The notes beneath the pieces are model-generated. The model saw only the letters and a list, made by a program, of their open reading frames with translations, made no database searches and was not told the DNA's origin. A program made the position numbers and the translations under genes. This document shows, in pieces, positions 675 through 21,489 of a stretch of 32,000 bases of DNA; position 1 is the stretch's first letter; each line of letters starts with the position of its first letter. Where the stretch lies: the NCBI GenBank assembly GCA_054661495.1, contig BAAFSQ010000003.1, forward strand, positions 60,001 to 92,000. Reading direction: 5' to 3'. Origin of the DNA: Zygophlyctis sp. KS116 (lineage: Eukaryota > Fungi > Chytridiomycota).

Positions 675-2789
675 ATGGAACAAGACTTTACTGACCAAGA
701 TCTGAATGATCCCACTCTTTTGGCAGAGCTCGCAAAGCTTGGATTGTCTGATACAGTAGATGTTGTTGTAGGCCAGGTGGATCATGTTGAGATTAATACT
801 GAATTTGATGATGTGGAAGTTGAATTTGATGATAAAGACATGGAAGATCCTGATTTACTGGTAATATGCAATCATTAATCAATAGAAAGATCTTCAGAGA
901 CTACATGATACGGCCATTGATCGGGAAGAGACCAAAGATGATCATAATCAAGAGCATAAGACTCTTCGCAATGCAGAGGTGAATACGATCGCCAAGAATC
1001 AAGGGGAGTTGGATCAAGGAGAAGATCAGGAAGACTTGCTCAAAGAATTAATACAAGGACAAGTTTCCAAACCCATCGTTTCTCCGTCGATAGATCAATT
1101 AGAGACTTTACAAGCTAAAGCACTGGAATTAAAAAAAACGGCACTGAAATTTAAAAAGGAAAATAATTTAGTAAAGGCTAGAGAAGCTCTGATTGCTTCT
1201 AAAAAGGTTCAAGAGCAGATAGATAGAATTACTTCTGGATTTGCAGTATCTCCAGGGTTTGTGATTCCTGACTTGACTGTGCAGTCTCCAAACATTAACA
1301 GTAATAGTGGTACTACTAATTCTGTTGATGCTGCTAATGTAACCAATACGAGTAATTCGAATGAATCACGTAGATCTATAAGGAAAGAAGTTGTCTCTCC
1401 TAAAATATTACAAAAAGACATCATTCCAATCATACACGATGATCAATTTGATCCATTAAAAGAATTAGAGACAAAAATGGAATCAACAGATATTTTCAAG
1501 CATTTAAGTGATGTATTGAATGAACAGATTAAGACTTGTACGAATTTATCAGCTTACTACTTTAAATCTGGAAAGAAAGATAAAGCTTTGGAGTTTCACA
1601 AGTACAAAAAAGGATTTTTAAGTGATTTAGAAGCTTTATTAGCTTTATCAAAGACCAGTGGTGCTGCACCCCCTACTTTCTCTTATTTTAATATTGCTTA
1701 TAATATTGAAATACGGGTTTCAGAGTTGAGCATGGATGAATTACTCTTAAATATTGTAAAAGGATATGATATGAATTCTTTTCAAGGAAATGAACTCTCA
1801 ATTTCTTTTAAAATAGAAGGATTAGAAGACAATGGAGGAACAGGAGAAGTTTTATTTCAAAAAGAGAATAATCCAGGTATATGAATTTTTTAAAAATCTA
1901 GAGATTAAGTTTTCTAAAAAGATAAGTATTCAAAGAAACAAGAATTTTCAAAGGATTTTAGAACGTAAAAAGGTCCAATTAGAACTTTATTCTACCTCTA
2001 CACAATTCTTTATTATGAAAAAGAAAACCTTGATTGCTAAAACATCTCTTAAATTGGATAATTTGCTCAATAAGTGTGAAATTCATGAAATATTTAGTGT
2101 AAGATTATATTTATTCTTAAATTCAAGTTTATAGATCCTAATAATCCCAGAAAATCTTTAAATTCCAAATTGGAAGTAAAACTTTGTCTATCTCAACCAG
2201 TTTTAAAGCCTGAAATAGTCTCTAAACAAGAAAGATGGATACAAATAAGTTTTGATAATCCAGAAAACTATAATTCTCCTACTAATACTCAAACTATAAT
2301 TAAAAAGGAAATTTCAAAACCTGTAGATACTATAAACAAACCAGATCGTGTGCCCAAAAGCTCATCTCCTATTCCATCTACTCAAGAAAACTCTGATGAA
2401 ATAGAAGATGCACTTTTATCTTTTAAAAAGTAATTTATACTGTATTAACGATTAGTGTTGATTCAATTGTATCTAATCTAGTTTTAGAACATGAATCTAG
2501 TGAAATATCAAGAGAAATTCAAAATCTTAAATCTAATGGAAAGACTGTTCCAGCAGATCTATCAGATATATTATTGTCATATGAAATCAAGATGAATTTA
2601 TTAGTTTCATTGGTTCAAATGGGATCTTTAACACCTGCAGCATATCTTGAACAATTAAACAATTTCTTGAAAGAAACTAAAAGATTAGCTTTAACATTTA
2701 AAAAGGCTAACAAGACTGATGAAGCTCAAAAAGCAATGATCAGGATAAAGCTCATTACAAGAGAGATTTCGGAAATCTCTATTGATTAA
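675..2789 (+). CDS. CC2D1A/B (Lgd)-like DM14 + C2 domain protein
   Basis: Spliced model with introns 861-885, 1877-1901, 2099-2127 and 2430-2455, all restoring frame. DM14-like helix (KALELKKTALKFKKENNLVKAREAL), C2-like region (KLDNLLNKCEIHEIF..LEVKL), C-terminal SNLVLEHE..VQMGSLTPAAYLEQL. Confidence 0.75.
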
Positions 2790-2797
2790 ATTAGGAA

Positions 2798-5700
2798 ATG
2801 TCCTTTATATCCAATTTTAAGAAGCTAACTAAAACTAGAGGTAAACTTCCAATTGAATACTTGAATTTGTACTTTGAGACATTATTTACTCCCTGGAAAG
2901 TCTCTATTCTTGAGAAATTAGAAATTAAACGACTCAAAAAGCTCTATAATTGTCAAAATGAAGATATTTTATTATTTTTACTGGAAATATCTAGACTAGA
3001 CTTGAATTCAGAGTCTTTAGAAGAGACAGAAACTCAAAATTCACTACAAATTGTTTCACAAGTCAATTATTGGCCTATATTACCAGTAGAACCTGTAAAT
3101 CCAGTGGATATATTATACAAAAATTATGACTGTATTTGTATTAATCAGGATGATTCAGATAAGAGTATAGACAGTGGATATGAGTCTATAGGAACGTCTG
3201 GAGCGTGTTTCGACCAGGATGTTTACTCTACAATGGAAAATAAGGGATTAAGAAAGGTATATTTTTATATTTAAAATAAGAATTTACTTTCTTGTCTATT
3301 GGGAGTGAATTCTTCTTCATTTATAGAGTCATCAGGGGAATTAATACCATCAAAAAATTTGGTTTTAGAGTCTAGAAATCTAAATGTATTCACTATATTT
3401 TGTCAAATTGGGACTAAAATGAAAAAATTAGAAGATATTATGGTTTTGATAGAGTAATTTAGAATATTAATGGTAACTATAGGGATCAAGGGATATATTC
3501 AGGATTAAATAGAGTCTATTTAGGACTACGAGATGAAATATTTCGAATTTTTCAAACGGAAAGGTTGTATGTGGACTTGTTCAAGGCTATGCAATGTTTA
3601 AAATTTGACATGGAATTCTTTATAGATAGGATATTGGGAAATATTTCATCAAGGGTGATTATAAATAATACCTTTTCATGTTTGAAGAATCTAGAGGCTG
3701 TAAGTTTGGATCTGGCTGGAGCAAAGTTGTATATTACGTTGAAGGAAATGTTTTTGTACTCTGTAGAGCCGATTGTGGAGTCAATAGTGCAAGGATCTTT
3801 TCAAAGAGAAGAAAATCAAATTCCAGATTTTTTAAGTCTAGAAAATGTTTTACTTATTCAGGAAAAAGAACAGGCGATTTCTATATTACATATGTTGGAT
3901 AGTAATCATCCTCTAATTACTTTCAAACGGACGTTCTCAAAAAGTAATATTACAAAAAGCTTGTTCTTACTATCGTAATCGACTTTGCATAATTTTAGAT
4001 CTCAACAAGAAATATTAATTTATTATCAGGAAAGTAAACAGATGGCTTTAGATTATTATCACATGTATAATAAGGCAATCGAGAAGTTGAAAATGAAGGA
4101 AAGACAGGAAAAACTGTTAAAAATAGAAATGGTATTTCTAATTTTTACTTAGCAAAAGGCTATAAATCAAGTTAAAGCTATGGAAGAATTCACCATAAAA
4201 AAGAAAATACTCAACCAAAAATATAAGGAAAGGCTTCAAAAGGAAATTCAGGTACGCATTCAAAATCTAATATTAGGAATTCCTAGATTCTCGTGAAAAA
4301 TATCGACAAGATCTACTAAAGTCTGAGCAAAAAAAGGATGAAACTTACCAAAATAATTTAAAAGTTTTAGAAAATGTTGAAATGGAATCAATGATCTCTA
4401 ATTACAAACAGAAAATTCAGCATTTACAGAAATTGGAAATTCGTTTGAAATGGAGAACCCAACGACTGAATTCCAAGAGCAAATTGCAAAGTCTATTTGA
4501 ACATAATACGTGGGAAGAACAACAATCTTGGCTCTCGACGTTGCCGACTGTTGGAAGATTATGCCCTGAAATGGAAAATGAAGAGGATTGGATTGCGAAT
4601 TTCTTGATTGCAAATAATCACTCTGATCACATCGGTAATACTTTTGAACGATCGCAGAGTGAAGACACGCTAGTTATTGACAAGGAAGAAGAATTATTAG
4701 ATGACGGGGTAAATCTAACAGTTGAAAAAATGGATTTGAATGAAAATTTAAAGGTTGTTGTCTTGGAATCGGGCATGGAGCTTCAAAAAAGTGAAAATGT
4801 TGTTGAGGATAGGCCTAGATTGTTAGAAAGCCCGATATTAAGTGAAAGTAGTTTTGATTATTCTGAAAAGATATTACATGAATCGGAAATGGATGGTGAT
4901 TCAAATCTGTCATTAACATGGCTGCTGAATCCCCAGTCCAATGATCTGGCTTCTAATATTAAACCTGATGATGATTGCTCTCTTTCTGAGATGGAGTCGA
5001 TTAAAGTTTTCTCAAATAATCTGTCTTGCATGATTCAATTGGAAGCAGAAGTAGCATCTAGATGTACTTTACAATTTATTATTCGAGATAAATCCAAAGA
5101 TTTATCACCAAATGATTTAAGATGGCATCTAAAGCTACTCAACTGTGCTTTCTTAAGTATTGAATCGCCACGCCATGCAAATCTATCAGACATACTTTTT
5201 TGGCGCGGATTGAATATTGGGACTTTGAGTAAGTCTGTTCTAGTTGCCAAAATCTTTAATTCACTCTTGGCATTTGATCTCTTAGAGCCTGAATATCTGT
5301 CATTTATTGATTCTGGATATAGATCCCAAAATCCTAGCGGTAACAGTTTTTAGACACGCTAAAACATTTAGAGTTTGATTCTTTGAATTTCCTAGGTATT
5401 GAATATAAGTCAAAGCCTCCATTTGAATATTTCTTGGAAGCATCATGCATTCAAACATATCAAAAATGCTTCACTCTGCTACTACTGGTTAGTAGACTTC
5501 GTGAATCTATAACAAAATGTTTCAAGAATCATCTTGAAATAGGAAAGGATCTACTATTTTTCAGACTAGGTGCACAATTCTTTATCAATGCATGGATCCA
5601 ATACATTGATCTTTGTATATCTAAAACCATGACTCCCTTTATGAAGAACTTAGATCTACTGCATTCACAACTAGAAGAATCCGACTCTACTTTAATTTAT

Positions 5701-6006
5701 AACAACTTGAATACCTTGAAAACAGAGCTGAATAATGCAATCAATGGACTAGAAAAACAATTATTCTTCAATTCTACAAAAATTATGGGTGCGTTATATG
5801 CGCAAGCTCAACTCATTTTAAACGTTTTTGAATGCGAAAATTATTCTTCATTAGCAGATGAAATCAAAGCATACGAAGTAGGTCGGTATCATCTCGCATT
5901 ATGTCTAAATGAATCACAGCCTGGATGGACTTTCAAAAAGATGCTAGACTGTAACTTTTATGCAGTGCTAACAGCAGCTGAAGGAGCAGAACCACTTGAT
6001 TGCTGA
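2798..6006 (+). CDS. Gamma-tubulin complex component (Spc97/Spc98 family), GCP6-like
   Basis: Introns 3257-3280, 3454-3482, 3975-3998, 4132-4152, 4252-4276 and 5340-5371 join the ORF fragments in frame. GRIP1-like start (LLSCLLGVNSSSF), long coiled-coil/acidic insert, GRIP2-like LGIEYKSKPPFEYFL..YQKCFTLLLLVSR. Confidence 0.7.
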
Positions 6007-6740: not shown

Positions 6741-6812
6741 TAAATAGCATTACGAGGAAGCTCTCATGACTCATATTCAAACGGATGCAATCATATTCAA
6801 GAAATCAAACAA

Positions 6813-8376: not shown

Positions 8377-8551
8377 CCAGTTTATTATAGAAAATCGGAC
8401 TTTTTTGAATGATCAACTCACAGTATGAAAGTAGAGGGGACATTTGGAAATTTAAATGATAAAGACAATGCATCGGTTTAAATTTATTATTAATATCTTG
8501 AAAGACTGGAGACTTGAGTCTGGAGACTGTTGTGTGCAGGTTTCGTTGCAA

Positions 8552-11500
8552 ATGGCAGAGTTTACTGATTTGGGATTCTTCTCTCCAGCGCCGGTTAAAG
8601 AGGAGGAAAAGGATGATGAGATGGAAGTAGTGGAAAACAAACTTGCTGTCAATGATCTAAAGGCTCAAAAAGTAAAAGTAAATAATAATCAAATTCCAAT
8701 GGATTTTGATCTTTGTAATGCAAGAGAAATTTTTATAAAGTTTCTCTCAAACGATTTAGACTTTAATAATTCTCAGGCTCTAGATTCAAGAAAATATTTA
8801 GAATCGGTAATTTGGAAATTTTAAAAAATAGTTTTTATTGCCAAAGATGCAAGATAAAAATGTGGATTTTCATATAATTCAGTCTATTGTGATTATGGTG
8901 AATTATCAATGTTTGATTGGGAAAAAATGTTTAGTCGATTCGAGATTTTCAAAAATATTTTCAAAATCTTTACTGGCATACAATGATTCTAATGCAAGTT
9001 TAAAGAATAAAAGTGAAATTCACACTTTTTTAGGAAATTGTTTTTGTAATTTGGATTTGGCTCATGTGAAATCTGAAGCTCAGAGATTGGTTGGTATTGG
9101 GACTCTTTGTAATATTGGAGATTATACAAGACAATTGTATTTTAAGCAAATTCCAGAGCTTGAAAGTGTTTGGGATAAAACTATTTTGAATTTAAAAAAT
9201 ATTAAAAAGGAATCTACAAGAGAACGGGTGGAATCTGAACGGAATTTTATGTTTAATGCTTTAAAAACAGTTTTAAAAGTAATGCAGGTGTCGTTGGATG
9301 AAGAAATTTTGGATGATTTATTGCTTTTTGTAGAAACTTTGTTGGATCTAGCACTAAAGATTATAATACAGATTCCTTCAAGACGGTTCTTTAATTTGAT
9401 TTTAAAGGATTCTTTATTCTTTTTACGTGCAAAAGAATCAGTTCTAGTTCAACGGTTAGAGAAACAAAAAAAGGATAAGCATATAAGGCTTTTGCAATTG
9501 TTGGATTTGGTAGAATTTTATTCATATTTTGAAATTGATGAATCTACTGGACTGGGTTTTTCTAAACAGGAAGTTATTCATTTGCATTATGATAAAATTA
9601 AGCAGTTGCAAAAGTTTTGTTTTCAAAATTTAAAAGATCAAGCTGTAGATTTTGCATTATCAAATGTTGGAGCTGTCGATAATCCAGATTCTTTAAATAG
9701 AATACTCTCTGCAGTTCCAATATCTGCCTTGGTAGATATGTCAAATCAATTAGGAGTAAGGACTACTGATTTAGATGGTCATGACGTTGAAAAGGGATTT
9801 TTGATTCAATCTTTAATTTATTTTCTGAAAAAGAGAGAAATGGAAAGGCTTGAGTGGATGCGAAATGATGTTTTGTACCTAGATGAAAGAATTATATTTG
9901 ATGAATCTGTATCAAATTTAAATATGCATCCTGTTGCTCTTGCTCCTTCAAGTCTACGGTATCTTACTTTATCTGATTACCTCTATCGACAGTATCGCCT
10001 GTTAAAATTTGAATATGCAGACCGTCTAAGAAAGGATATACTAGATGCAGCACAAAGACTCTCTCCTACTGGAAACAAACATTCCAAAAATACAAACTCT
10101 GTAGTTTTTCAAGGTGCAGCTCGCATGGCCATCCCAATTGAAAAAGTAGAAATTGTGGAAAAAGGAAATACAATGATTGGACATATTGCACCGTCTTATG
10201 TAAGAGCTCATATTGTGTTTTCTTTATCAAATTTGGAAAAAAATATGGCCGAGGAATGGGATTTGCTTGCTAGTGATGATATTCTATATTTGCTCTCCTT
10301 TAATGGTTCTGTCTCTAAACAAAGTAATGATGATGACTTGTTGACTAGAGTTGATCAAAGATTTGGGTTAAAACACGTTCGAGGATGTAAAATTGTCGGA
10401 TGGGTTGGATCTAACGGCCAGATTTTGAATGAAGGAATTTACAATGATTCAAAGATAATCGATAGGTCTACTGGATCTCTTAGCTCTTCAAGGACATTGT
10501 TGGTTGAGTTAGATCCACATCAATACGTACTTGACCAGAATAAGAAAAAAAAGAAATCATCTGCTGCTGATTTATATGAATCTTTAAACGTCATCATGAG
10601 ACGTAAAGCAAATGATAACACATGGGGCCATTTATTACAACCTTTTAGGGAAGTTGTTGGATTTGAAAATCTGATACCGCCATGGTTAAAAGGTGGATTT
10701 CTCGGGCATGAAGATCCATCAAGTTCCAGTTACAGAAATATTCCCGACCTAAATTTGACATTCAACTTTAGAGATACATTTTTAGATATAGATCATATTA
10801 AAGAAAGCTTTCCGAATATGGTAAATTCTTTAATATTTATAAATAGGATATAGCAATGGATAATAATGCGGCGGAACCCCCGTTTGTCCTCAATTTTCCT
10901 TCTAAATTTTGGGAATTTCAGCGGGATCTTGAAAGTCAACAGGAAAATCCTAAAAAACGGAAAATTAATGAAGGGAATGACAAGTCGAGCGGACCTACTC
11001 TTGAAGTTAAAGGTGCTGTAGCCACCTTCCATCCGTATGAAGGATCAAATTCCAAAAATAGTTTTAAGTATTCCCGTTTTCAAAGTATGTTTTTATCTAC
11101 TAATTCTAGTTGAAGGGATTTTGTCAGGTATGTGTCCAGCTTTGACTATGATTAAAACTCCAGCAGGAACAAATGGTATCTCTGTGGCTGCACAAATAGC
11201 ATCGAATCTATATAACAACGGCCAAAATCACCATTTGCTTGTTGTATCCAATACTGATTACACACTGGATCGATTTTTGGATTCTTTAACACCACTTAAT
11301 ATCGACGAGCGTCACATTTTAAGACTAGGGCACTTGACTGATAAGTGGAATCCTAAAAATCAATGTTGGGGTAGAGCAGGACGTGTAGATTCGTACCTAT
11401 CCAAAAGAATTTCCTTGCTAGAAAAGGTTTCTAAATTGGTAAGGAGTCTTGAAATCGAACAAGACTATGGAGCAACATGTGAATTGGCTGGGTATTTCTT

Positions 11501-12869
11501 TGAAAGTACTATTAGTCCACTATGGAAAGAATTTTTGAGTAAGAATCAGTCTAGTTCTCCTTCTGAAATCAAAGATTCATTTCCATTCTTGGAATTTTTT
11601 TCAGATCGTAGCAGTCCTCTTTTCAACGAGGAAATGTCTTTTTCTGATGCTTTACATGTTGCAAAAGGCTGCTATGAATATATAAGATCTATTTTTATAG
11701 ATCTCTCCGAGTTAAGACCTTTTGAAATTTTAAGAGCTGGAGAAGATCGGGCGGATTACTTAATCATGAAGGGTGTAAGAGTGGTAGCATTAACCAGCGC
11801 GTACGCCTCCCTTCATCGTGAAAAACTCCTCCGTCTTGGATTCAGGTTTGAAAGTCTAATCATTCTTGACGCTGGACAGCTTTTAGACTCTGAAGTATTC
11901 TTTACTTTTCTTTTGCAGGGATTACACGAGGAAACTGGTTTGTCTCGGCTGGAAAGGCTAATTATGGTTGGCGATGATTCACGTTTACCTCCAAAAGTTT
12001 CCAGTACAGCTCTTTCAAGGAAATGCAATCTGAATCAAAGTTTATTTTCCAGGCTCACCCGTTTAGGCTTTCCAGTGATTGAACTAGAGGAACAGTCTGA
12101 ATACCGCCCCACAATTGCAAATATATTCAGATCTTGCTATAAGGAGTTGGTTGACTCACCTTTAATATCAGAAATAGAAAATTTCAAGTACGCTAATCCT
12201 GGTTTTTGCTTTGAAACGCAATTTATAAATGTTGATGATTATATGGGAAGAGGTGAAACGGAGCCAAGAAAGCAATTTATTCAAAATTTAGGAGAAGCAG
12301 AGTACGCAGTTGCTATTTATATGTATATGAGATTAGTCGGTTATCCTAATAATTTAATTTCTTTACTCACATCTACGCATGGTCAAAAAGAGCTAATTAA
12401 GGACATTATCAAACAAAGATGTGGATGGAATAATTTTTTTGGAATGCCATCTGTTGTAGCAACTTTTGATGAATATTCAGACCAGAAGAATGCTTATGTT
12501 ATTTTGTCTTTGGTTAGGACAACAAATCTAGGAAATCTTGCTGATGGCCGGCGACTTTTATCTGCATTTTCTAGGGCAACGACCGGATTATATATACTTG
12601 GACGGAAGAGCATTTTTGAAGATTCTGATGTTTTCCAAAATTCATTCAAGAGCCTCTGGACATACCCTCATAATCATTTATGGATTAATACCGAAGAAGT
12701 TTTTGAAGATAAGTCTAGAAGTGTAGATAATCATCACCTAAAGTTTGTTTCAAAGTCTTCAGAATGGCAAGTTTCAAAGAAAGAGCAGGATGAGGTCAGA
12801 GGGATTGGTAGTGTTGAAGAAATGGGTGATTTGGTGCATGCTTTGTCCGAGAAGAAATTAAAGGATTAA
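8552..12869 (+). CDS. AQR: Intron-binding spliceosomal protein Aquarius (AQR/Cwf11) with degenerate helicase motifs
   Basis: Introns 8807-8831, 10821-10846 and 11085-11109. Aquarius signatures: QIPSRRFF, YLTLSDYLYR, VELDPHQY, FRDTFLDIDHIKESFP, IDERHILRLGH, ELRPFEILR, QNLGEAEYAVAIYMYMRLVGYP. Confidence 0.92.
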
Positions 12870-12895: not shown

Positions 12896-14365
12896 ATGTT
12901 TCGAATAATAATGATCTTGATATTGTGTATTAATGAGACTCATAGCAGAATTATTAGATCAAGGCCCAATCATGAGTTGGACTATCCAGTGCGTGAATTG
13001 GCAATTGTATACTACTCGCAATCTTCAACTTTAACATTGAAACAGAAATATCATAGATCGCCAATCATTAAAATGAAGATTAAATCAAAGGGATCATGCT
13101 TAAATGTTGATAATGTCTTCGGACTAGAATCCATCATTTGCCGTGATGATCGTATGCACATGAAGCTAAACAGGAAGCTTTCAATATCTCACTGGAATGT
13201 GTCAGATGGCATAACATTTCTTATCAATCCTCATTGGAACTGTTTGGGCAATCATCGGGCTGTATTTCTATACTCTAAATCTTTCATTGCTTTATCAAAT
13301 GAACTAGTATTCAAAGTTCAGACTGTTCACCCAACAGATGTTATTGATGAATATGAATTTTTAATCAGGCCTAATAATGAATACACTCAGGAACTACTTG
13401 TTGGCGACGCTCAAGGCAATAATATGATGGCACCAAATGAATTAGAAAAAATGGATGATACACTGCCATTCGATTATGATTTATCTGGGCAATCATGGGA
13501 TGTTGTGCTAGGGAATACACATTCTTTGCAGCCTTCATCTGCTACAATTTATTGTATATCGTGTCATTTATCAGGGACTAATGCTCTATATTCTAATCTG
13601 AAAGGATCAACTGCTATAGATAAGCTTGATGCGGTTTTCAAAACTGGTATTAGTTCTTCTTTAAATGCGGATTTAGAATTGGTCCTGGAAATAACAAATC
13701 TTGCAATATCAAGTAAACTGGGGCTTATGTCATGGAAACAATCTATATTCAAGTTAAATTTCTTGCCAATTTCAATACCTGGATTATTCGACATTGGTAA
13801 TATGCTATATATAAAGTCATCATAGAAGCAGCAATATGGATTGATGCCTCATTGCATTTTGCACTCTTAGGAAAAGGGAATATTACCATTAATTTTTCAT
13901 TTAATCAATCACAATCATTTACAGAAATGGAAGTAAAAAATGAAAATCCGCAAATATTTAATATCTCAAGTAGACCCATCATTAAAATTGGACTTGAGAA
14001 TCCAACAAACGATTTTTCGGTATTCATATAACAATTAATCGAAGGTTTATGGCGCATCTGTAATTTCTCCTTCCGTGGGTATTCGTGTCAGATTATTCGA
14101 TAGACCATTTAACTCTTTCGTTGGACTTCGTTATGATGTTGGCGTATCATCTCAAATTGATATTTATTCTGCCCCATTTAAAAAGGATCATCTAAAAATT
14201 ATATTTTCAGAATGTCCGAATGGTAGTTTTGGGTTTTCAAAAGACCGTTTTGTGAAAGTTGTTGGAAATGTTGGACCATTTGAACATTGTATTTGGGCTC
14301 CTGAAATATATAATTTAGATAAAGGATGTATTCCCGCAGATCAGATTCAATACTCAAATTTGTAA
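12896..14365 (+). CDS. Secreted beta-rich protein of unknown function, paralogue A (resembles fungal DUF7029/DUF7223-type proteins)
   Basis: Signal peptide MFRIIMILILCINETHS; introns 13797-13825 (alternative acceptor 13816) and 14020-14044; paralogous to the next gene (C..C.L/V.GT, IPG.F, terminal GCI). Confidence 0.65.
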
Positions 14366-14917
14366 AGCATCACAAGCATATTTGTCAGCTGCTTCAATAC
14401 GATCAATCATTAAAATGGCAATCCACAATTGTTTTTATTTTTTATTCAATTTCTTAATTGTTTCCAGCCATTTCCTTAGTTCCTATCCAAAGCATGAATT
14501 CGGATCACCTTCCCAGCGACTCGTTGCTCTTTATCATTCAGGATTTCTGGCTGCACACCACAATTTAACATTGAAACAGAAATATCATAGATCGCCAATC
14601 ATTAAAATGAAGATTAAATCAAAGGGATCATGCTTAAATGTTGATAATGTCTTCGGACTAGAATCCATCATTTGCCGTGATGATCGTATGCACATGAAGC
14701 TAAACAGGAAGCTTTCAATATCTCACTGGAATGTGTCAGATGGCATAACATTTCTTATCAATCCTCATTGGAACTGTTTGGGCAATCATCGGGCTGTATT
14801 TCTATACTCTAAATCTTTCATTGCTTTATCAAATGAACTAGTATTCAAAGTTCAGACTGTTCACCCAACAGATGTTATTGATGAATATGAATTTTTAATC
14901 AGGCCTAATAATGAATA
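13030..14917 (+). repeat. 354-bp identical direct repeat (13030-13383 and 14564-14917)
   Basis: Both copies run from TTTAACATTGAAACAG to GGCCTAATAATGAATA at offset 1534; no mismatch seen by eye; flanks strongly diverged. Confidence 0.9.
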
Positions 14918-15808
14918 TCATCGCAATCTATTGTTTTATGATCGTATCACTGAACACGACAATAATACTACTGATCATCTAAAGCCGTTCAATTACTCAT
15001 TCACTGGAACTTTATTTGATACAAGTGCACCTTTCACCAATGTCATCAAAAACTATTTTAGAATATCCTGTGAGAATTGTACTGTTGAAGGAACGACAGA
15101 GTTATCTGCACATATTCGTGGCCCGGGCTTACTGAATAAAGCCCATGCGGTAATTGAAACGGGTATCGGATCAGCCTTAAATTTAAAGTTGATATTGGTT
15201 TTAAAAAGTGTTGGTGTATTTCTCGATCCATTTAGTTGGAATCGTAATTTGTTCAAACTAAAACTATTTCCTTGGTCTGTTCCTGGGATATTTGAACCTG
15301 GTATATTTACAATTACTTAAGATTAGATGTTTCTTTCAAGATTGATTTATCAAGCAGTATCCGACCACTAGCAGAAGGGGTATCACGATTTGCTATATCT
15401 CTCAACCATGATTACTCAAGAGTAACTATGCACTCTGAAAATGGGATTTCTAATACTACCATGGATATGCAAGAACCAATATTTTCTGCAAATTCAACTT
15501 CCAATTTCAAGGGTGTCAGTTTCATCGGTTCTATTAATTTTTCCCCGTCTATTACTGCATCAATATCCTTCTTTAGAATGGCTGTTCCTCTGGCAGCCAT
15601 TTCATATAATACAGGATTTTCAGCAGTTGTAGATAATTTATCTGGAAATCTATATAATCAATGTAAATCCAACTCTTTTAATCTAACTGCATTTGGAAAT
15701 TTTAAAGGATCGATTGGTAATTTTAGTAGAAATATGTTGCGTCCGATCACTAAAAAGCTCAAGAGTGGATGCATCAATCCAATTCCACAGCGAAACGTAG
15801 GGCGATAA
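14415..15808 (+). CDS. Secreted beta-rich protein of unknown function, paralogue B
   Basis: ATG at 14415 (MAIHNCFYFLFNFLIVSS signal peptide); intron 15301-15326 at the position homologous to intron 1 of paralogue A. Confidence 0.65.
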
Positions 15809-15820
15809 AACTTTAAACAA

Positions 15821-17202
15821 ATGTCTGTTCTCTTGGAAACATCTCTAGGAGAGATCGTTATTGACTTGTATCTTGAGAAATGTCCAAAGGCCAGTCTCAA
15901 CTTTTTAAAACTCTGCAAAGTAAAATATTATAATTTCTCTTTATTTCACAATGTGCAAAAAGGATTTATGGCACAAACAGGCAAACCCGGAGCCGTCGAT
16001 GCTTTTGAAACTGGGGAATCTGTTTGGGGGTAAATTGATGATTAATAATGATAGGCTGATCCATGGAGCCGATAAGCGATATTTTGTTCCTGAATTTCAT
16101 CCAAAGTTGAAACATAATCAAAAAGGGATAGTATCAATGGCTACAGTGACTTCTGAAAATGGAACCCACTTGGCTGGATCTCAATTTTTTATTACTCTTT
16201 CAGATGGTCATTTGGAGTATTTAGATGGTAAAATGTCAGTTTTTGGAGTTGTTGCTGAAGGTTTAGACGTTTTGGATAAAATCAATGAAACTATTACTGA
16301 TACTGAAGGGATTCCGTATAAAGACATTCGGATAAAACATACTATAATTTTAGAAGATCCTTTTGATGATCCGTCAGGCTTGATAGTCCCTGATCGATCA
16401 CCAATTTTAACTGAAGAAATGTTGAGAAAAGGAAGGATAGGAGAAGATGATGGGGAAGAGGAAGAATTGGATCCTGAAGCCTTGGAAAAAAGGACACGAG
16501 AAAGAGAAGCTGAAGCTAGAGCACTTACTCTTGAAATGGTGGGAGATTTACCATTTGCTGAAGTCAAACCTCCAGAGAATGTATTATTTGTATGCAAATT
16601 GAATCATGTTACACGCGATGATGACTTGGAACTGATATTTTCAAGATTTGGCAAAGTCTCTAGGTAATTTCAAGATTTAATTTTGTAGTTGTGAAATTAT
16701 TAGAGATCCTAAAACTGGAGAGTCTTTACAATATGCATTTATTGAATTTGAAGATAAAGAAGCATGTGAAGAAGCATATTTCAAGATGGATAATGTTTTA
16801 ATAGACGACCGTAGAATCCATGTTGATTTCTCACAAAGTGTATCAAAACTTCACCAAGACTTTTTAAGAGGAAATAGAAATCCATTAGATGATTCTTTTG
16901 GAGGAAGTTCAAATCTAAAAAAGAAGACCCAATATAGAGACCAAGAGTATTCACGTTCAAAGTATGATTTAGTTTTTGAACATTCTGGTAATATTTCTGT
17001 AGAAAAGAAAAGAAAAGAGAGCCATGATTCAGTTGGACATGATAAAAGTAGAAATAGATCAAGAGAAAGATATAATCAAAGAGATGATTCTAGAGATCGC
17101 TCTAGAGAACGTACCAGACGTCGCTCAAGAGATCGTTCTAGAGATCGCTCAAGAGACCGCTCTAGAGGAGATCGTCAGAATCGTTATACATCACATCGAT
17201 AA
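15821..17202 (+). CDS. PPIL4: Cyclophilin-RRM-RS protein PPIL4/Rct1/Cyp59
   Basis: [83 protein letters not shown] tail; introns 16030-16054 and 16664-16688. Confidence 0.95.
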
Positions 17203-20211: not shown

Positions 20212-21489
20212 ATGTCGTTTAAAGATCTAGGACTCGTCCCAGAACTGGTTGATGCCTGTTTAAAGTTGGGATTTACAGAACCAACTGAAATTCAAAAAGA
20301 GGCTATCCCATTAGCATTAGAAAAAGATCTCATTGGTCTAGCTCAGACTGGTAGTGGTAAAACTGCTGCATTTGCTTTACCCATTTTACAAAAACTATTT
20401 TTAAATCCACAACCATTTTTTGCTTGTGTCTTGGTTCCAACCAGAGAATTGGCTTTTCAAATATCTCAGCAGTTTGAAGCTTTGGGTTCTGGAATTGGTG
20501 CAAGGTCAACTGTAATTGTTGGGGGGATGGATATGATGTCTCAATCAATTGCATTATCAAAAAAGCCTCATGTGGTTATTTGTACTCCAGGAAGGCTGTT
20601 GGATCATTTAGAAAATACTAAAGGATTTAATCTAAAGCAGTTAAAATATCTAGTATTGGATGAAGCAGATAGATTATTAGATATGGATTTTGGTCCGGAA
20701 ATTGAAAAAATTCTAAAAGTGATTCCAAGAGAACGCTCAACATTACTATTTTCTGCTACAATGACATCAAAGGTAGATAAACTACAAAGAGCCAGTTTAG
20801 TAGATCCAGTAAAAGTTTCTGTGGACACAAAGTATACTACAGTTTCAACTTTGCAACAATCTTATCTCTTTTTTCCTTTTAAACACAAGGAAGTTTACTT
20901 GGTGTATTTATTAAATGAATTAGCAGGTCAGACAACAATTGTTTTTACATTAACTTGTAATTCTGCTCAAAAGTTGGCGTTAATGTTGAGAAATTTGGGA
21001 TTTTCTGCAATCTGTCTTCATGGTCAAATGTCTCAAACTAAAAGATTAGGGGCTTTAGGAAAGTTTAAAGCCGGTGGAAGGAATATTCTTATTGCTACCG
21101 ATGTTGCAAGTCGTGGGTTAGATATTGCTGGAGTTGATGTTGTCATTAATTATGATGTTCCTGGTAGTTCAAAGGATTATGTTCATCGTGTTGGTAGAAC
21201 TGCAAGAGCTGGAAAGTCTGGCAAATCTGTTACATTTGTTACTCAATATGACGTTGAGTGGTATCAGAGAGTTGAACATGCTATTCAAAAGAAATTAGAT
21301 GAATATCCAATCGGTGATAAGTCTCAAGTTATGATATTGAAGGAAAGAGTCGATGATGCTGTCAGATTTGCTCATATGCAAATGAAGGAAGAAAACATGG
21401 GGAAAGGAAGGAAACATAGAAATGAGGACTCGGAAGATCGAAATTCTCGAAAGAAAGTTAACAAGGTTCACGGAAGGAAAAAGTATTAA
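20212..21489 (+). CDS. RRP3: DEAD-box rRNA helicase Rrp3/DDX47
   Basis: [21 protein letters not shown] and [10 protein letters not shown] all intact; Rrp3-specific DHLENTKGF and VTQYDVE. Confidence 0.96.

Follow-up and report, generated by a model that had tools for sequence, protein, structure and literature searches.

Introduction

Catalytic activation of the human spliceosome has been described as the work of two motors, PRP2 and then Aquarius (AQR, or IBP160), acting against a brake formed by PPIL4, SKIP and the N-terminal domain (NTD) of PRP2, and from the conservation of these components it has been proposed that the scheme is possibly universal (PMC10208982). A single substitution in human AQR, K829A, abolishes its function and leaves the spliceosome stalled before branching (PMC10208982), and the protein has a further part in termination, when it pulls on the lariat (PMC13736545). 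AQR and its fission yeast orthologue Cwf11 leave footprints ~33-50 nucleotides (nt) upstream of the branch point (bioRxiv 10.1101/226894; PMC13736545), and Chen et al. raise the question of the Cwf11 binding site on introns of <60 nt (bioRxiv 10.1101/226894). The present analysis concerns the AQR gene in a stretch of 32,000 nt from the chytrid Zygophlyctis sp. KS116 (contig BAAFSQ010000003.1, positions 60,001 to 92,000 of the forward strand), the whole of which is referred to below as the window. The gene is a bona fide AQR orthologue which, as judged from its motifs, would fail as an active superfamily 1 (SF1) helicase, and several other such cases have arisen convergently.

Identity of the gene and state of its helicase motifs

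The AQR gene lies at window positions 8552-12869 on the forward strand and is divided into four exons by three introns (Table 1). An initial annotation, made from the sequence alone, had described it as full length and uninterrupted after splicing, and this is borne out by an open frame of 1413 codons once the exons are joined across the three introns of 25-26 nt. All three introns are of the GTA..TAG type, and the junction of exons 3 and 4 reads FQ-IEGILSG, to which TQIEAIRAG corresponds in the alignment with human AQR. None of the RNA-seq runs that were searched for the locus or the organism carries it, and for that reason the introns are predictions resting on reading frame, consensus and homology. 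Use of the joined protein was confined to scripts that verified the reading frame and assigned codons to classes, all AQR searches, alignments and trees being based on single exons rather than on the spliced model.

Two Aquarius N-terminal domains were recognised by Pfam in exon 2, Aquarius_N_1st (PF16399, E = 5.1e-49) and Aquarius_N_2nd (PF21143, E = 2.5e-41), with a partial match to Aquarius_N_3rd (PF21144), just under the cut-off, at the end of the exon. Exon 4 contains AAA_12 (E = 2e-15), and AAA_11, the half of the core with RecA1 and Walker A, scores 21.8 bits there, under the Pfam cut-off of 27. Comparison of exon 4 with human AQR (4pj3) by phmmer gave E = 4.9e-135 for residues 790-1322, collinear over 533 residues, and UPF1 and SEN1 were matched only at E ~1e-8. 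In a six-frame search of the 12.7 Mb assembly this was the only AQR copy, a count that applies to the 1175 contigs of an assembly whose completeness is not established; the remaining matches were Upf1-like or more distant SF1 proteins. Neither a second, intact AQR, which the initial annotation had named as grounds for abandoning its interpretation, nor an alternative exon with a P-loop was found anywhere in the assembly, and motif I sits within the continuous exon 4. The features by which members of the AQR orthologue group are recognised, namely the Aquarius N-terminal domains, a collinear SF1B core of two RecA domains and a single locus, are all present. The gene is the single AQR/IBP160 orthologue, belonging to a family of spliceosomal intron-binding-complex proteins, of a freshwater lake chytrid.

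The helicase motifs were read from the phmmer alignment with human AQR and from residue look-ups in the 150 best orthologues of a library of 1.8 billion proteins, 134 of which carry the canonical GxxGxGK[TS], the rest being mostly fragments. The changes to motifs I, II, III, IV, Va and V given in the initial annotation are all seen in this alignment, those in motifs Ia and VI are additional, and the conserved scaffold blocks that it had listed (IDERHILRLGH, ELRPFEILR and QNLGEAEYAVAIYMYMRLVGYP) are present. In the acidic pair of Walker B (EE in AQR, DE in Upf1) the first residue has become Leu and the second Asp. Of the sequence marks of an active SF1 helicase, Walker A, the Walker B pair, the motif VI arginines and motifs Ia, IV and V are all degenerate. 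A set of 35 intact animal and fungal AQRs defines 212 near-invariant columns. Of the 50 that fall in the catalytic and RNA motifs the window protein retains 24, 26 having changed, and of the 162 elsewhere it retains 118 (Fisher p = 0.0018); in long-branch intact AQRs 94-100% of the columns of either kind are retained. The terminal branch of the helicase exon (3.87, median 0.29) is the longest among the 44 sequences in its tree, and that of the N-terminal exon is 3.27 (median 0.48). The decay is targeted at the motifs for ATP binding, hydrolysis and RNA contact.

It could be argued that AQR is an enzyme still, working through non-canonical residues, or that it has become an ATP-independent RNA clamp which uses the helicase channel. 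The fold has been retained with no large deletions across both RecA domains, several residues are left, namely the Q-motif Gln, GD..LPP (motif III), GQ (motif Va) and the first motif VI Arg, and the helicase exon is under purifying selection (see below). Against this, the Lys and Thr of Walker A, both acidic positions of Walker B and the second Arg of motif VI have changed together, when K829A by itself suffices to kill the function of human AQR (PMC10208982). The sub-threshold match to AAA_11 also tells against an enzyme and the rewriting of motifs Ia, IV and V against a clamp, and such a retained activity would be very improbable.

The decay is specific to AQR, and Upf1, Rrp3/DDX47, PRP2 and the other DEAH helicases of the genome retain their motifs. 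Upf1, which represents the closest paralogous helicase family, still reads GPPGTGKT, DEATQ, GDHQQLGP, QYRMHP and VALTRSKYG and matches human UPF1 with 570 bits over 376 residues, and the Rrp3/DDX47 of the window is 73-82% identical to those of other chytrids. The genome holds eight DEAH paralogues, all of them with DEAH and seven with a QRxGRAGR motif VI; a GSGKT-type Walker A was seen in seven and not found in the other (L025), where an intron may interrupt it. PRP2/DHX16, encoded on G000:C13, is among the eight and matches residues 214-375 in the NTD of DHX16. Its motifs are intact, and the co-degeneration of PRP2 for which the initial annotation had allowed is not seen.

Table 1. Features of the AQR locus and of neighbouring genes (positions in the window)
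Feature	Position	Strand	Description
Gamma-tubulin-complex (GCP) gene	861-6006		adjoins AQR
AQR exon 1	8552-8806	+	ATG at 8552, 85 codons; joins exon 2 in frame after removal of a 25-nt GT..AG intron
AQR intron 1	8807-8831	+	25 nt, GTAATT...AATAG; lake variant G>A at 8814 inside
AQR exon 2	8832-10820	+	N-terminal ARM and beta-barrel scaffold; Aquarius_N_1st, Aquarius_N_2nd and start of Aquarius_N_3rd (Pfam)
AQR intron 2	10821-10846	+	26 nt
AQR exon 3	10847-11084	+	ends in the conserved Gln of the Q-motif region (..YSRFQ, followed by I)
AQR intron 3	11085-11109	+	25 nt, GTATGT..ACTAAT..TAG; branch-point-like ACTAAT ends 5 nt before AG
AQR exon 4	11110-12869	+	entire SF1B (Upf1-like) helicase core and C-terminal tail, including stop codon
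Motif I/Walker A, degenerate	11157-11180	+	TPAGTNGI for GPPGTGKT; Lys to Gly, Thr to Ile
Motif Ia (RNA contact), degenerate	11238-11276	+	LVVSNTDYTLDRF for LIVTHSNQALNQL; core THSNQALN to SNTDYTLD
Motif II/Walker B, degenerate	11862-11879	+	ILDAGQ for MEEAAQ
Motif III, altered	11964-11993	+	MVGDDSRLPP for MIGDHHQLPP
Motif IV, altered	12087-12110	+	EEQSEYRP for DAQGRARA (QGR to QSE)
Motifs Va and V, altered	12366-12521	+	LTSTHGQ ... TFDEYSDQKNAY for LTTYNGQ ... TVDRFQGQQNDY; Va TTYNGQ to TSTHGQ, V TVDRFQGQ to TFDEYSDQ
Motif VI, partly altered	12549-12602	+	RRLLSAFSRATTG for RRLVVAMSRARLG; SRARLG to SRATTG, first Arg retained, second gone
Tandem paralogue 1	12896-13825	+	no Pfam match
Tandem paralogue 2	14382-15320	+	no Pfam match
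PPIL4 (cyclophilin + RRM)	15821-17202	+	exons 15821-16029, 16055-16663 and 16689-17202; two 25-nt introns; 3 kb downstream of AQR
Rrp3/DDX47	20212-21489	+	single exon; metagenomic relatives P0272 (Logan) 90% and P0273 (JGI) 79% identical

Natural variation and selection

Contigs from two other lake metagenomes (X6 and X7) span motif I with only one synonymous difference, and because two independent lake metagenomes carry the same motif I the change is not an assembly error. Nor is it due to chance, the P-loop being kept in 134 of the 150 orthologues. Variants were collected from four lake metagenomes, from four studies, which together hold most of the AQR locus. The 37 best-supported coding variants divide into 22 synonymous and 15 non-synonymous, which over 890 synonymous and 3349 non-synonymous sites gives a ratio of non-synonymous to synonymous polymorphism (pN/pS) of ~0.18, and none of the 37 is a frameshift or a stop. 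The helicase exon contributes synonymous and non-synonymous variants in the proportion 6:6 (pN/pS ~0.27) and the rest of the gene 16:9 (~0.15). AQR is still under purifying selection, and it is unlikely to be a neutral relic. Neither an assembly artefact nor a pseudogene will account for the gene, given that contigs from independent metagenomes agree, that the frame is unbroken and that synonymous variants are in excess.

A further interpretation would have the gene decaying towards eventual loss, budding yeast being an example of an organism that has no AQR. In their respective trees the branches of both halves of AQR do rank first or close to first in length, and 27% of the near-invariant columns outside the motifs have changed. 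Such a course is nevertheless difficult to reconcile with a frame that is unbroken across three introns, with variants in four lake populations that are mostly synonymous, or with the many strongly conserved blocks and a match to human AQR that still reaches E = 5e-135. Moreover, equally decayed AQRs persist across clades, in Pneumocystis, the Batrachochytrium clade and Taphrinomycotina, and a relic about to be lost would seem most unlikely.

Two further observations were made on the lake metagenomes. X6 carries a 14-nt insertion, GAGACTGAAGACTG, at 8515, in a GACTG-rich stretch just upstream of the AQR ATG. In two lakes, contigs of another organism with loose ends (X4 and X7) match only the 60 nt at 12276-12335 (QNLGEAEY...) and show an apparent GTATGT..AAG intron of ~22 nt right after 12335; they probably come from a relative with tiny introns and a different AQR intron position.

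Proposed function of the protein

On the evidence of its motifs, the AQR of this chytrid is probably an ATPase-dead structural subunit that is maintained by selection. The central claim of the initial annotation, that of a pseudo-helicase kept as a scaffold, is well supported at the level of sequence by the single copy, the preferential loss of motifs, the purifying selection and the intact state of the other helicases, although it remains a prediction from sequence. The helicase core has kept its fold but lacks the Lys and Thr of Walker A, the acidic residues of Walker B and the second Arg of motif VI, and most of the RNA-contact residues in motifs Ia, IV and V are gone as well. Because residues for ATP binding, hydrolysis and RNA contact have been lost, the protein is most likely no translocase. 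Its role would probably be structural and independent of ATP, within the intron-binding complex and the part of the spliceosome related to the Nineteen Complex (NTC), and PRP2/DHX16, which is intact here, may alone power catalytic activation, as has been proposed for budding yeast (PMC10208982). Mutation of one lysine makes Aquarius dominant-negative in human extracts; the only Aquarius of this genome naturally lacks that lysine, and PPIL4 and PRP2 are conserved.

A number of points weigh against this interpretation. The loss of ATPase activity is read from motifs, the expression and splicing of AQR are predicted, and its membership of the intron-binding complex is putative. The pN/pS ratio comes from 37 variants in contigs of low depth, and 52 more variants lie outside this count. 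The N-terminal scaffold is fast-evolving too, and it may be that the whole protein is instead under relaxed constraint. Lastly, PPIL4 and part of the PRP2 NTD are retained, and in the human spliceosome the brake to which they belong needs the AQR ATPase. Because these parts of the brake have been kept, a simple mechanism driven by PRP2 only is hard to square with the gene content, and either the brake is released without the AQR ATPase or PPIL4 has another role.

Decay of Aquarius in other lineages

Comparable decay of AQR was found in Pneumocystis, Saitoella, Sugiyamaella, the Batrachochytrium clade and two metagenomic proteins, P0144 and P0074 (Table 2). All of them have long helicase branches and most also lose motif columns preferentially. 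In P0074, from contig L024, both acidic residues of Walker B are gone; a word-indexed search with this protein gave a single, distant match. The motifs are intact in almost all other sampled chytrids (Chytridiales, Cladochytriales, Spizellomycetales, Rhizophlyctidales, Synchytriales, Polychytrium and Gonapodya) and also in Neocallimastix, Mucoromycota, Zoopagomycota and animals. A full-text search, within the library of papers covered, found no description of a naturally ATPase-dead Aquarius in fungi.

Table 2. Aquarius in lineages with decayed or intact motifs, with intron lengths
Lineage	Motifs	Walker A	Motif II	Other motifs	Introns
Window chytrid	decayed				25, 26 and 25 nt; window mode 25
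P0074 (contig L024)	decayed	kept	VVNANQ	motif IV QMN	five introns joining open reading frames, 20-21 nt
Pneumocystis jirovecii	decayed	GAPGTGRT	YKSSNQ		Pneumocystis AQR gene, 19 introns, 39-47 nt, median 45
P0144 (contig L023), Taphrinomycotina-like	decayed	GGPGTGHI	VLDAAI		41-44 nt
Saitoella complicata	decayed	CPPGTGDA	IPDCAY		Saitoella AQR gene intronless
Sugiyamaella lignohabitans	decayed	TPPGTGKL	IMECGQ
Batrachochytrium dendrobatidis	decayed	GVPGSGKT	VDDAHQ	III, IV, V and VI altered	AQR gene intronless; PPIL4 gene, two introns of ~89 nt
Homolaphlyctis polyrhiza	decayed	STPGSGEV (Lys to Glu)	VASAHE
Polyrhizophydium stewartii	decayed	GAPGSGKT	IDNAHA
Rhizoclosmatium	intact				AQR-gene median 61.5 nt
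Spizellomyces	intact				AQR-gene median 72 nt
Synchytrium	intact				AQR-gene median 75 nt
Rhizophagus	intact				AQR-gene median 79 nt

The number of independent events is complicated by the length of the AQR branches, with which the grouping of the window sequence with the Batrachochytrium clade (approximately unbiased (AU) test, p = 0.38) and with P0074 (p = 0.65) are both not rejected. Because these long branches make AQR uninformative, placement was based on Rrp3. In the Rrp3 tree the window sequence forms with P0272 and P0273 a clade with 100% support within the core Chytridiomycetes, which joins no sampled order and falls outside the Rhizophydiales and the Spizellomycetales. If this clade is made to join the Batrachochytrium clade the log-likelihood falls by 24 units (p-AU = 0.0095), in a test of one gene and of a group chosen after the first tree. 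Independent origins are the best reading of the two chytrid decays, because the Rrp3 test rejects their joining and because AQR is intact in the Spizellomycetales. In fungi the AQR motor has decayed independently at least four or five times, the window gene being one instance. Pneumocystis and Batrachochytrium, both pathogens, are among the several fungal lineages with an Aquarius of this motor-dead type. If confirmed, these lineages would be natural experiments on the role of Aquarius without ATP, on the release of the brake and on the position of Aquarius on introns that are too short for it.

Some non-catalytic replacements are shared among independent decayed AQRs, for example VAVQ to VAAQ after motif I, Ile or Val for the Met that immediately precedes motif II, and Leu for Phe in the N.AF stretch after motif III, which suggests convergent settling into a common relaxed state. 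A separate observation concerns P0007, which is labelled as the AQR of Dinochytrium kinnereticum (Rhizophydiales). In both AQR trees it falls in a tight group with Chytridium lagenaria and Phlyctochytrium planicorne, perhaps because the public record is contaminated, wrongly labelled or affected by a problem of taxonomy.

Intron length and decay of the motor

The initial annotation had spoken of introns of ~25 nt, and a scan of the window for GT..AG intervals joining long open frames agrees with it, giving ~19 such introns, which range over 20-32 nt and are most often of 25 nt. A branch-like motif, TTAAT or CTAAT, lies 5-8 nt before the AG in introns of the window, and in the 25-nt introns only ~17-19 nt separate the 5' splice site from the branch point. 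It has been suggested, first in that annotation, that ultra-short introns (20-30 nt) give AQR no RNA to grip, so that the motor was useless and decayed as an adaptation or a consequence. The 17-19 nt of the window introns, set against a footprint placed ~33-50 nt, or more narrowly 33-40 nt, upstream of the branch point, speak for this, as do further decayed AQRs from lineages with short introns (Pneumocystis, L023 and L024) and the four intact-motif lineages with AQR-gene medians of 61-79 nt (Table 2). Introns of ≤45 nt (20, 25 and 45) occur in three of the four independent decays for which they were measured, and introns of 61-79 nt in all four intact lineages. In Stentor, with introns of 15 nt, the best AQR match reported is weak, covering 34% at 25% identity (PMC9505925). 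L023 shares its efThoc1-AQR neighbourhood with Pneumocystis and Saitoella. L024 is a eukaryote contig of 38% G+C, with introns of 20-21 nt at, for example, 2560-2580, 6773-6792, 8501-8520 and 11753-11772; because its CK2beta is only 40-42% identical to that of the window genome, it represents a distant second lineage with ultra-short introns.

The Batrachochytrium clade, however, decayed independently according to the Rrp3 test in spite of the ~89-nt introns of B. dendrobatidis, lengths that were obtained by tblastn of the window PPIL4 exons on the gene of that species because the scan for introns joining open frames was too noisy at its G+C content. The initial annotation had held that the same loss in relatives with normal introns would break the link to intron size, and the clade of Batrachochytrium, Homolaphlyctis and Polyrhizophydium partly supplies such relatives. 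A comparison of four lineages with four is not significant; it leaves out Saitoella, Sugiyamaella and Homolaphlyctis as well as short-intron lineages such as Paramecium, and the independence of the window lineage and L024 is not demonstrable from AQR (AU p = 0.65). Of the causal claim, then, the part that stands is that several decayed lineages are short-introned, causation not being established. Because four against four lineages is not significant and Batrachochytrium is an exception, the link between intron length and AQR decay is suggestive, a reasonable hypothesis neither proven nor excluded, and ultra-short introns as the cause of the decay must be regarded as rather doubtful. The more general proposition, that intron geometry sets the need for the AQR motor, introns too short for the RNA channel of AQR (≤~45 nt, with 20-25 nt as the extreme) leading to repeated convergent decay of the motor while the protein and PPIL4 are kept as structure, is equally tentative and on balance unlikely. 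Were it true, the window chytrid and the organism of L024, with its introns of 20 nt, would be the clearest examples, and the "two ATP-dependent steps" of activation would not be universal.

Neighbouring genes and partners

The window PPIL4 is well conserved, matching the human PPIL4 chain of the B-AQR structure (7qtt_V) at E = 6.6e-62 by phmmer. Of the members of the intron-binding complex (AQR, SYF1/XAB2, ISY1, PPIE and ZNF830), Isy1 is present in the genome, on G000:C287, and there are about a dozen cyclophilin genes (25 exon-level matches), among which PPIE was not told apart. A gene with Pro_isomerase and RRM domains lies 4 kb downstream of AQR in B. dendrobatidis (L022, 18941-20462), and a gamma-tubulin-complex gene adjoins AQR both in the window and in Rhizoclosmatium (L053). 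The arrangement GCP-AQR-PPIL4 looks like the remnant of an old chytrid microsynteny linking two functionally connected splicing genes. Between AQR and PPIL4 there are two tandem paralogues (Table 1), identical to each other over a long stretch of their interior (HRSPIIKMKIKSKGSCLNVDNVFGLES to EYEFLIRPNNEY) and different at their ends.

Comparison with known systems

The human protein (PDB 4PJ3, and the B-AQR and ILS-AQR structures) has the same order of parts as the window protein, an N-terminal ARM domain, a beta-barrel with insert and an SF1B core, and is likewise a single-copy orthologue. It is an RNA-stimulated ATPase in which K829A is dominant-negative (PMC10208982), whereas the window protein has Gly at that position. 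Cwf11 of Schizosaccharomyces pombe (PDB 3JB9) is a fungal AQR orthologue and a stoichiometric component of the spliceosome in an organism whose introns are mostly <60 nt (bioRxiv 10.1101/226894). It matches the window protein with 217 bits, as against 455 for human AQR, and its helicase region is very divergent. This divergence is familiar to specialists, and the open-access papers in which Cwf11 is mentioned are silent on the state of its motifs.

Closer parallels are found among the decayed proteins. The AQRs of P. jirovecii, S. complicata and L023 resemble that of the window in having a degenerate P-loop and Walker B and a preferential loss of motifs, but these Taphrinomycotina-type proteins belong to the Ascomycota and carry other substitutions, and the introns of P. 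jirovecii and L023 are almost twice as long. B. dendrobatidis, Homolaphlyctis and Polyrhizophydium (Rhizophydiales) are of the same phylum as the window chytrid, have degenerate motifs II-VI and have PPIL4 a few kb downstream of AQR; unlike the window protein, that of B. dendrobatidis keeps GxxxxGKT, its introns are of ~89 nt and its decay is independent. Budding yeast, in which one ATP-driven motor, Prp2, is at work, provides the working model proposed for the window genome with its intact PRP2. It lacks AQR and the PPIL4 brake (PMC10208982), however, while the window chytrid keeps both.

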